Positions 1,398 through 1,897 of a DNA stretch of 64,000 bases are shown piece by piece (position 1 is the stretch's first letter; every line of letters starts with the position of its first letter). A program made the translations under genes and the position numbers. The stretch is from IMG/VR virus record IMGVR_UViG_3300046703_000335, positions 62,001-126,000 of that record; one strand, written 5' to 3'. The notes under the pieces were generated by a model. That model was not told the origin of the DNA and did not search any database. It worked only from the letters and a program-made list of their open reading frames with translations.

Positions 1398-1541
1398 AAA
1401 AAATTACGCAGAAGTTAGGGATGCTAATTTTTTGGCTTCTAATGATGGACTTGAACCATCGACGCATTTCTTATAAGGAAATTGCCCTACCAACTGGGCT
1501 AATTAGAAAATGTAAGCAACCAAAGTAATTGCGTAATTTTT
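1398..1541 (-). ncRNA. Y-RNA-like element A: conserved closing stem enclosing a complete tRNA
   Basis: Minus strand: AAAAATTACGCA-ATTAC-TTTGGTTGCT-TACATT-[tRNA]-AAAAATT-AGCATCCCTAA-CTTC-TGCGTAATTTTT; 12-bp terminal stem and motif shared with elements B and C. Confidence 0.75.
1433..1508 (-). tRNA. tRNA with anticodon UAU (Ile, reads AUA), 76 nt with encoded CCA; nested in element A
   Basis: Acceptor TTCTAAT/ATTAGAA, D-arm GCCC-AGTTGGTA-GGGC, anticodon arm ATTTC-CTTATAA-GAAAT (TAT at 1475-1473), T-arm GATGG-TTCAAGT-CCATC, discriminator G, then CCA. Confidence 0.85.
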
Positions 1542-1551
1542 ATTATTGTTT

Positions 1552-1576
1552 GTTTCAATCCGCGCTTTTCAGCGAC
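1552..1576 (-). repeat. miniature type I-C CRISPR-repeat-like unit, copy 2
   Basis: GTCGCTGAAAAGCGCGGATTGAAAC: GTCGC start, CGCT-GAAA-AGCG hairpin and GGATTGAAAC end, as in I-C repeats (GTCGC...GCGTGGATTGAAAC). Confidence 0.75.
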
Positions 1577-1598
1577 TATATAAAAATGAGCTAATATA

Positions 1599-1717
1599 AG
1601 AATCTCTACCTAAGTCGTTCGTACTATATGATGACCAGATACCCATACTGGGCAGTGATCATCAAGTTTTTTTTACCCAAAAAAAATGTAAGTCCAAACT
1701 ATAATGGTAAAAATTCT
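1599..1717 (-). ncRNA. Y-RNA-like element B: conserved closing stem with a non-tRNA two-hairpin insert
   Basis: AGAATTTTTACC-ATTAT-AGTTTGGACT-TACATT-[T-run GGGT A-run hairpin; GATGATCA..TGCCCA-GTA-TGGGTA..TGGTCATC hairpin]-AGTACGAACGA-CTTA-GGTAGAGATTCT; ACT/AGT co-varies with GCT/AGC of A and C. Confidence 0.7.
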
Positions 1718-1733
1718 ATTAATTCGTTTGTTC

Positions 1734-1758
1734 GTTTCAATCCACGCTTTTCAGCGAC
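1734..1758 (-). repeat. miniature type I-C CRISPR-repeat-like unit, copy 1
   Basis: GTCGCTGAAAAGCGTGGATTGAAAC; 24/25 identical to 1552-1576, 157 nt between the copies. Confidence 0.78.
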
Positions 1759-1775
1759 TGTACAAAAGTAAAAAA

Positions 1776-1897
1776 GTTGAAACTACAGAAGTCGTGCATG
1801 CTAGTCTGAGGGATTTGAACCCCCTACCTATTGATTAGAAGTCAATTGCTCTACCAAATGAGCTAATGTAAGCCTTCACTGTAATTGTAGTTTCAAC
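1776..1897 (-). ncRNA. Y-RNA-like element C (YrlA-type architecture): tRNA-Arg(UCU)-like D/anticodon/T arms with the acceptor stem replaced by the conserved stem
   Basis: GTTGAAACTACA-ATTAC-AGTGAAGGCT-TACATT-AGCTC ATTTGGTA GAGC A ATTGA CTTCTAA TCAAT AGGTA GGGGG TTCAAAT CCCTC-AGACT-AGCATGCACGA-CTTC-TGTAGTTTCAAC; no acceptor stem, no CCA. Confidence 0.75.

Follow-up and report, generated by a model that had tools for sequence, protein, structure and literature searches.

The window described here is a stretch of 64,000 nt (positions 62,001 to 126,000) of the 210-kb viral contig IMGVR_UViG_3300046703_000335, which comes from the genome of a huge phage recovered from a metagenome. All of the large open reading frames (ORFs) in the window lie on the minus strand, and its genes include those for a NAD-dependent DNA ligase, a DNA polymerase, a DnaB-type helicase, a ParB-like protein, a transposase and a tail-fiber protein. 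Near the start of the window, an array of three structured elements, modules A, B and C, lies upstream of a gene for a Ro60-like protein (Table 1), and it is with these modules, which are probably Y-like RNAs, that we are concerned. Ro60 and Y RNAs are conserved from bacteria to humans, and Ro60 is a major human autoantigen.

Table 1. Positions of the modules and other features. Numbers preceded by L and a colon refer to related viral loci; all others are positions in the window.
Feature	Position	Strand	Remarks
Module A	1776..1897	minus	P1 1897..1886 with 1787..1776; covariance model 97.5 bits, E 1e-21; minimum free energy -35.8, z -3.8
Module B	1599..1717	minus	two G-U pairs in P1, ACU/AGU atop P2; covariance model 42.8 bits, E 1e-7; minimum free energy -36.6, z -4.9
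Module C	1399..1541	minus	covariance model 104.8 bits, E 1e-23
Modules with permuted cargo	L007:3008-3161, L008:3443-3593, L009:3526-3676, L005:3352-3502, L012:3135-3292, L012:3327-3470		
Ro60-like gene, first 157 codons	1..471	minus	rest past window start; full gene L001:732-2294, minus, 520 amino acids (aa)
Type I-C-repeat-like hairpin GTCGCTGAAAAGCGTGGATTGAAAC	1734..1758	minus	between A and B
Second I-C-repeat-like hairpin GTCGCTGAAAAGCGCGGATTGAAAC	1552..1576	minus	between B and C
Degenerate hairpin plus GTTGAAAC	1890..1922	minus	just upstream of and overlapping P1 of A
AT-rich box CATTTTAAAATAGTATTTGC	1954..1973	minus	upstream of module A; identical in L039, nearly so in L003
Strong intrinsic-terminator-like hairpin and T-run	1200..1244	minus	downstream of RNA array
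103-aa ORF	846..1157	minus	between RNA array and Ro60-like gene; kept only in close relatives L003 and L007
88-aa ORF	530..796	minus	directly upstream of Ro60-like gene; conserved in 10 related loci, e.g. L003:3673-3930, L010:3721-3957
Homing-endonuclease-like ORF	10386-11474	minus	among replication genes
Transposase	23038-24243	minus	phrog_506, E 4e-111; among replication genes
90-nt tandem repeat	42186-42392		2.3 copies, 90% identity; within large minus-strand ORF

The three modules of the window

Read on the minus strand, modules A, B and C share one frame, which consists, from 5' to 3', of a 12-bp stem (P1), ATTA(C/T), 10 nt ending in (G/A)CT, TACATT, the insert, T-AG(C/T)A, 7 nt, CTT(C/A) and the returning strand of the stem (P1'). 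In letters, module A is GTTGAAACTACA-ATTAC-AGTGAAGGCT-TACATT-(insert)-T-AGCA-TGCACGA-CTTC-TGTAGTTTCAAC, module B is AGAATTTTTACC-ATTAT-AGTTTGGACT-TACATT-(insert)-T-AGTA-CGAACGA-CTTA-GGTAGAGATTCT, and module C is AAAAATTACGCA-ATTAC-TTTGGTTGCT-TACATT-(insert)-T-AGCA-TCCCTAA-CTTC-TGCGTAATTTTT. No two of the P1 sequences are related, and each is fully paired with its own partner, in B by way of the G-U pairs. The top of the second stem, P2, is GCT/AGC in A and C and ACT/AGT in B. An original prediction, made from the letters of the window alone, had claimed an identical scaffold in three elements, P1 sequences that differ entirely and still pair, and covariation of GCT/AGC to ACT/AGT, and all of this is borne out by our reading. 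P2 proved longer than the GCT/AGC first described, extending over about 9 bp with one or two mismatches (in A, GUG.A.GCU/AGC.U.CAC). The same prediction had described the inserts as unrelated; this is correct for B, the insert of which is not related to tRNA, and incorrect for A and C, which are both of tRNA type and 75% identical over 61 nt.

The 21-nt 5' pattern ATTAYN7RCTTACATT has three exact matches in the 64 kb, all in A, B and C, and ten further matches, each with two mismatches. When the elements were folded singly by minimum energy, each formed P1, a 6x6 internal loop and P2, with z scores from -3.8 to -4.9, and none of 200 shuffles folded as well.

Module A has the 5' loop AUUACA and the 3' loop GACUUC, and a run of six U follows P1'. 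Its insert is a tRNA-like body with a D arm, an anticodon arm (loop CUUCUAA) and a T arm, and matches Rfam tRNA with 51.3 bits at 1807-1866, over model positions 7-64 only. Because this insert has no acceptor stem of its own, P2 sits at the place of the acceptor stem. Module B carries a U7/A7 hairpin and a long hairpin, UGAUGAUCACUGCCC..GGGUAUCUGGUCAUCA, the core of which is kept in the orthologous modules of L003 and L039. Only the insert of C forms a full cloverleaf with a 7-bp acceptor stem. ARAGORN identifies it as tRNA-Ile(UAU), complete and with its CCA encoded (1508..1433), and the match to Rfam tRNA extends over the full length (62.8 bits, positions 1-71). It begins directly after UACAUU, and an A-rich linker, AAAAAAU, then leads into the 3' strand of P2 (P2'). 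In the orthologous modules of related loci, the cargo tRNAs keep a nearly identical acceptor stem and the G73 discriminator, whereas the anticodon is UAU in the window (1433-1508, minus strand), UAC in L039 (~2468-2543) and GCA in L003 (2955-3029), which hints at mimicry rather than ordinary decoding.

Related modules and their cargo

We fetched 37 viral loci (L numbers) through an alignment of Ro60-like proteins, with 4 kb on each side, and in almost all of them the Ro60-like gene is preceded, on its own strand, by tRNA or tRNA-like genes. Direct reading of L003 and L005 revealed the same frame around different cargos. In a scripted search requiring TACAT, a CTT/ACT box and a flanking stem, 31 clean modules turned up across 11 loci, and when their flanks were cofolded alone, P1, the internal loop and P2 appeared in every one. 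A covariance model built from these 31 modules was then run on the window and the loci, and gave 91 matches in the window and 33 loci; within the window it matched A, B and C only. Full-length matches numbered 80, distributed over the window and 24 related loci, in arrays of up to seven modules, and the module-bearing loci range from 20 to 86% in protein identity, some being at only 20–42%, and from 34 to 60% in GC content. A loose scan of viral contigs for the module pattern gave, among the at least 120 matches listed, almost exclusively chance hits and one true module, L102, on a 1.6-kb piece.

Rfam holds models for YrlA and Y_RNA. Searches of the window and 15 loci at the gathering score and at E values up to 10 returned tRNA, weak CRISPR-DR9 matches and one HEARO RNA, and no Y-type family. 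The motif had originally been put forward as new, with a comparison against Rfam by Infernal as its check; that comparison gave only tRNA matches for it at the gathering score. The HEARO RNA (RF02033, 90.2 bits) is located at L007:2109-2294, just upstream of the module array of that locus.

The cargo of the modules includes complete tRNAs, tRNA bodies without an acceptor stem (like A), permuted bodies, a lone T arm (L010:3421) and unrelated hairpins (like B). ARAGORN calls a tRNA in 33 of the 80 inserts, and a CCA is encoded in 16 of 32 cases within modules, compared with 34 of 100 outside them, a difference too small to be decisive. Complete cargo tRNAs start 0–2 nt after UACA; in half of them the CCA is encoded and an A-rich linker comes next. 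In the permuted cargo, the order is T arm, closed acceptor-like hairpin, D arm and anticodon arm, so that the frame is effectively at the position of the variable arm. Minimal modules of 79–83 nt (L019:3711-3789 and L018:2851-2933) have a cargo of 16–17 nt. Since the frame occurs without a tRNA, down to these minimal modules, it is the constant and self-sufficient part.

Three tRNAs with a UCA anticodon, which ARAGORN classifies as selenocysteine tRNAs and which are suppressor-like for UGA, were found by the Ro60-like gene (L010:3239-3315, L014:3685-3756 and L021:2696-2769). Those of L010 and L014 are within full modules, and that of L021 lies under a partial match of the model (positions 23-117).

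In L005, every module has its own promoter-like CTTGATC-N17-GGTATATTAG, and across the family a T-run follows P1' in 54% of modules, compared with 14% of random positions. These features fit the whole module as an RNA product or transcription unit. A sigma-70-like promoter (TTGAAA-16-TAGAAT) in the repeat before B was dismissed as a chance occurrence, because its start would fall inside P1 and it is not repeated before C or in L007.

Covariation, strand and conserved letters

In an alignment of the 91 matches, which was fitted to the covariance model and thus favors pairing, 82.8% of the pair cells were standard pairs, compared with 52.5% in 500 shuffles and 35–42% when the partners were slid by 1–3 columns. 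The covariation score over the same alignment was 0.617, a value that none of the 500 shuffles reached (0.186), and it fell to 0.09–0.15 with slid partners; changes on both sides were seen in 20 of 20 pairs, with a mean of 18.8 in shuffles and 15–18 in the slid versions. Support that is independent of the model came from three sources, all of which agree with the frame. RNAalifold, given a plain MAFFT alignment, found P2 unaided, with double changes in six of its seven pairs; it did not recover P1, because differences in loop length put the P1 arms in two registers, which the model-based alignment resolves. Locus L039, with 86% protein identity, has A, B and C in the same order and several compensatory changes in both P1 and P2. 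The third source is the folds of single sequences described above. The covarying stems and conserved loops that had been predicted from three elements are thus found throughout the family.

Across the modules, 154 G-U pairs were counted against 63 A-C appositions, indicating that pairing has been selected in the RNA of this strand, not in the DNA. The unpaired letters of the frame are also conserved. AAC at the 3' end of the 5' loop is nearly invariant (A16 in 74 and C17 in 58 of the 80 full-length modules), A-C-U-Y in the 3' loop is kept in 73–80 modules, and U-A-C-A just after P2 in 75–79. The G-C and C-G pairs that top P2 are nearly invariant as well.

The neighboring Ro60-like gene

The 520-aa protein encoded downstream of the modules consists of a helical N-terminal part (a ring of helical repeats) and, at the C terminus, a vWA domain that carries the MIDAS motif DRSGSM. 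Searches of Pfam, PHROGs, NCBIfam and PDB sequences detected the vWA domain only (Pfam VWA_2, E 2e-4); Pfam TROVE was not matched at E values up to 1, or at up to 0.01 by ten distant relatives. A profile of 25 relatives compared with PDB sequences reached the TROVE protein of Thermus phage phiLo at an E value of only 0.27. The AlphaFold model of the protein (predicted local distance difference test score, pLDDT, 82.9) was more informative. Its 13 best fold matches in the PDB are all Ro60 or TROVE proteins, from Xenopus, human, Deinococcus (Rsr) and phage phiLo (including 9kop, 1yvp, 2nvo and 9l5y), aligned at full length over 500–580 columns with E values from 6e-11 to 3e-8 and template modeling (TM) scores of 0.54–0.66, and isolated vWA domains were far behind. 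Several of the best matches among viral protein models are annotated as Ro-like or TROVE phage proteins. By its predicted structure, the protein is a Ro60 orthologue that is too divergent for sequence models to detect, in keeping with the distinct Ro clade that had been postulated from the RNA.

Relatives of the protein number at least 480 in metagenomes, many of them on contigs of 100–470 kb. A search of viral contigs for close relatives with the 520-aa protein alone returned its own contig only, and the GenBank phage collection contained one match, with 42% protein identity, in an uncultured phage of 595 kb, and no cultured relative.

In the window, 927 nt separate the end of the modules from the Ro60-fold gene downstream, which is on their strand. 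Among the 80 full-length modules, 73 are upstream on the same strand, five are upstream on the opposite strand (all in L011) and two are downstream (in L030), counts that come from loci chosen through the Ro60-like protein, with equal lengths searched on either side of the gene. The median gap between module and gene is 486 nt. About 100 ordinary tRNA genes lie outside modules in the same loci, and where framed and ordinary tRNAs occur together, the framed ones are usually nearest the Ro60-like gene, as in L027 and L036.

Comparison with known RNAs

YrlA RNAs are found within 4 kb of a Ro60 gene and on the same strand, have a tRNA-like domain, and are present in phages as well (PMC4201824); Chen et al. 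2014 recognized them by Y RNA anatomy and by gene position beside Ro60 (PMC4201824). Like the modules, they often occur several to a locus, with the paired 5' and 3' ends forming one module and the tRNA-like domain the other (PMC4201824), and the YrlA order of T arm, closed acceptor-like hairpin and D arm recurs in the permuted modules of L007 and L008. In the window, by contrast with YrlA, the tRNA-like order is D, anticodon and T arm in A and that of a normal tRNA in C, and B is without tRNA features. The modules also differ from YrlA in lacking GNCGAAN0-1G and an Rfam match, in having conserved letters of their own (AAC, ACUY and UACA), in a cargo that may be a complete CCA-bearing tRNA or no tRNA at all, in arrays that extend to seven, and in a partner protein unseen by Pfam TROVE. 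The tRNA part of the window modules joins the frame by its acceptor end, as in Deinococcus Yrn1, whereas that of YrlA is joined at the position of the anticodon stem.

In Yrn1 of Deinococcus radiodurans, a long stem is found at the acceptor-stem position of a tRNA-like fold (PMC4201824), as it is in module A. Yrn1, the animal Y RNAs and the modules have in common a long stem formed by the ends, a conserved irregular helix and a variable distal part, and in the two former Ro60 contacts the helix. However, the modules do not have a helix of the GGUCCGA/UUGAC type, and their irregularity is an internal loop of about 6x6 instead of a single bulged base. Thermus phage phiLo encodes Yrl1 and Yrl2 upstream of its Ro60, and binding to that protein has been demonstrated (PMC12135203). 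The modules share with Yrl1 and Yrl2 the position upstream of a phage Ro60 and the stem-bulge-stem shape; the phiLo RNAs were chosen by their CGAA motif and bind a protein annotated as TROVE, whereas this motif is rare in the 5' strand of the modules, which carry tRNA cargo. Permuted arms held by paired flanks, as in some relatives, also call to mind the circularly permuted tRNA genes of the red alga Cyanidioschyzon and some archaea. Unlike those genes, the modules have no bulge-helix-bulge splice motif, those of the window are not permuted, and no sign of circularization was seen.

Interpretation of the modules

Paired ends, a conserved irregular helix, a variable distal module that can mimic tRNA, and a position by Ro60 together constitute the anatomy of a Y RNA. 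Because the modules combine this anatomy with acceptor-end joining and real tRNA cargo, and have neither the YrlA motif nor an Rfam match, they would represent a new structural class. Measured against the broad description of Y RNAs, they lie within 4 kb of the Ro60 gene on the same strand, and their ends are paired with a conserved irregular helix; their 5' strand has no known Ro60-contact sequence. We consider it probable that each module is a small non-coding RNA in its own right, that together they form a single family of modular Y-like RNAs not described before, and that they are the partners of a divergent Ro60 clade. Binding of the frame by Ro60 is suggested by synteny and by analogy with known Y RNAs only, and the complex may have a role in infection. 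The constant frame, comprising P1, the AAC/ACUY internal loop, P2 and the single-stranded UACA, is the predicted docking site for the divergent Ro60 encoded downstream, with the AAC/ACUY loop and UACA as the likely points of protein contact. The frame would thereby play the part that the conserved bulged helix has in the Y RNAs of animals and bacteria. The interchangeable cargo carried at its tip, which may be a real tRNA, an acceptor-less or circularly permuted look-alike, or some other hairpin, would take the role of the YrlA tRNA-like domain, and would link Ro60 to enzymes that recognize the shape of tRNA, or present tRNA to them.

Several observations weigh against this interpretation. Ten of the most distant Ro60-like loci have no full module by the covariance model, and no gene for RtcB, polynucleotide phosphorylase (PNPase) or another RNA-repair protein was found beside the Ro60-like gene. 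Half of the tRNA-type inserts, with their encoded CCA, their start 0–2 nt after UACA and their A-rich linker, would also fit simple tRNA release by RNase P and RNase E, and the pair counts given above carry the bias of their alignment. The mismatch to the YrlA motif noted in the original prediction holds across the family, since GNCGAAN0-1G occurs in two of the 80 modules and CGAA in the 5' frame of four, neither is on the 5' strand of A, B or C, and the Ro60-contact motif GGUCCGA is absent from the modules. With the known binding motifs absent, the docking site is proposed from position and conservation only.

Hairpins interleaved with the modules

Between the modules of the window lie 25-nt units of the form GTCGCTGAAAAGCG(T/C)GGATTGAAAC, at a spacing of 182 nt, which share both ends, GTCGC...GCGTGGATTGAAAC, with the published type I-C CRISPR repeat of Xanthomonas oryzae. 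Longer forms, in which the covarying stems have 6 bp and the TGGATTGAAAC tail is unchanged, are present in L007 (2836-2865 and 2920-2949) and in L010 (3387-3415 and ~3528-3556); the stem covaries among the window, L007 and L010, and these 11 nt at the 3' end are invariant. In L039, the place of the degenerate hairpin, upstream of module A, is occupied by a clearer I-C-like repeat (GTCACATCTGATGAAGGTGCGATGATTGAAAT, ~2113-2145). Modules A, B and C are kept in L039 with no repeats between them, indicating that the repeats are an add-on. Rfam CRISPR-DR9 matches of the hairpins were weak (E 3-7), and genome contigs searched with the repeat units for a host array gave no match. Judged by their sequence, the interleaved hairpins may be decoys of the RNA anti-CRISPR type or cut sites for Cas5d. 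A type I-C RNA anti-CRISPR, RacrIC1, is known (PMC10651486), and it is the interleaved hairpins of 25–33 nt alone, not the modules, that resemble it and solitary repeat units as phage-encoded mimics of CRISPR repeats without cas genes. The window hairpins differ from RacrIC1 in that their stem is cut to 3 bp, and in that they are embedded in a putative Y-like RNA array and not located by a known acr gene.

After some of the repeats of L007 and L010, stretches of about 50 nt (L007:2866-2919 and 2950-3007, L010:3557-3610) resemble the 3' half of a tRNA-type module, with the 3' strand of the acceptor, CCA, an A-rich linker, P2', ACUY, a P1'-like strand and a T-run, and have no 5' half. They could be remnants, or units comparable to CRISPR RNAs.

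Alternative explanations

A different function for the frame would be that of a leader-trailer processing cassette, the paired flanks of which guide host nucleases to excise the tRNA cargo, with Ro60 as a mere neighbor or acting on failed products only. The stem-loop-stem shape is reminiscent of RNase III sites, such as those of phage T7 and the processing stems of rRNA. The many inserts that ARAGORN calls as tRNAs, half of them with an encoded CCA, would suit such a function, as would the start of the tRNA just after UACA, the A-rich single strand after CCA, and the UCA anticodon of some cargo tRNAs, the release of which is possibly needed at a set time. However, more than half of the modules hold no releasable tRNA, their cargo being hairpins, a lone T arm, bodies that lack an acceptor stem, permuted bodies in which the acceptor hairpin is closed, or the minimal insert of the shortest modules, and the roughly 100 ordinary tRNA genes of the same loci lie outside modules. 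Furthermore, AAC, ACUY and UACA persist across genomes of 34–60% GC although RNase III has few sequence requirements, and the position by the Ro60-like gene is kept in very distant relatives. We regard a processing cassette as unlikely.

The interleaved hairpins raise the question of whether the locus is instead a CRISPR-like mini-array or an RNA anti-CRISPR locus, in which the hairpins are functional, as decoys or Cas5d sites, and the modules merely lie between them. The window modules are flanked by three units, two exact (25 nt) and one degenerate, similar units with covarying stems and the invariant TGGATTGAAAC occur in L007 and L010/L013, their ends match the published I-C repeat, and there is the precedent of a type I-C RNA anti-CRISPR (PMC10651486). 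This explanation seems to us very improbable, given that L039 keeps its modules without repeats between them and that most module-bearing loci have no such repeat. The 182-nt spacing is far from the 30–40 nt or so of regular spacers, the window ORFs tested included no cas gene, these versions of the repeat are carried by none of the genomes in the collection, and the CRISPR-DR9 matches are weak. It is hardly credible that the modules are copies of a small DNA mobile element with tRNA cargo, bounded by the paired ends as terminal inverted repeats. Inverted repeats of 12–22 bp around a variable cargo, in arrays, could be read in this way, but the P1 sequence is different in every copy, which would not be expected of one transposon family, and no target-site duplications were seen. 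The conserved letters lie in unpaired loops, compensatory changes preserve the pairing, and the 2.4-fold excess of G-U over A-C also speaks against a DNA element.

If the modules are Y-like RNAs for Ro60, the family is a large and easily recognized one, with about 80 module copies in this sample alone and at least 480 relatives of the protein in metagenomes. Its Ro60-side module would be constant, while the other side runs from CCA-bearing tRNA through permuted and truncated bodies to plain hairpins, a natural series in which the origin of tRNA mimicry in Y RNAs, and what that mimicry recruits, could be followed. A Ro60 clade missed by sequence models also suggests that Ro60 is commoner in huge phages than annotation indicates, and the frame makes it easy to search phage genomes, which are otherwise mostly unannotated, for non-coding RNAs. 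It is conceivable, as a speculative extension that we hold to be doubtful, that the frame is a universal loading cassette, with which huge phages mount a tRNA, a suppressor tRNA or a tRNA mimic on the Ro60 ring, using three to seven adaptors per genome. Such adaptors could gate the availability of phage tRNAs, or serve as decoys and as platforms for repair in the face of host nucleases that cleave tRNA, and in some lineages the type I-C repeat mimics on the same transcripts would join Ro60 particles to anti-CRISPR action.

Other features of the locus

The AT-rich box upstream of module A may be the promoter of the RNA array. Also upstream of module A, CTGATGA...GAAAC was considered as a hammerhead or other ribozyme and rejected, because no stem II was visible by eye and Rfam gave no match.

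Family searches with the 103-aa and 88-aa ORFs gave no match. The 88-aa ORF has an invariant NGNITVR...G near its C terminus, and its AlphaFold model is confident (pLDDT 80.5); matches of this model to known folds (ubiquitin-like and PB1) were not significant, the best, to ubiquitin-like domains, having an E value of 0.23. In L002, downstream of the Ro60-like gene and thus past the start of the window, weak Pfam matches below threshold were obtained to a JAB/MPN domain and to sigma-70 region 4 (L002:8101-8514 and L002:6611-7150, respectively). Together with the ubiquitin-like hint from the 88-aa ORF, these provide a faint lead.

No conserved ORF lies in the roughly 150 nt between module C and the strong terminator (1245-1398, minus strand), where there are further hairpins, such as TTGGATACC..GGTATCCCAA. 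This stretch, which has a counterpart of comparable length in L003 and L039, may be another small RNA.

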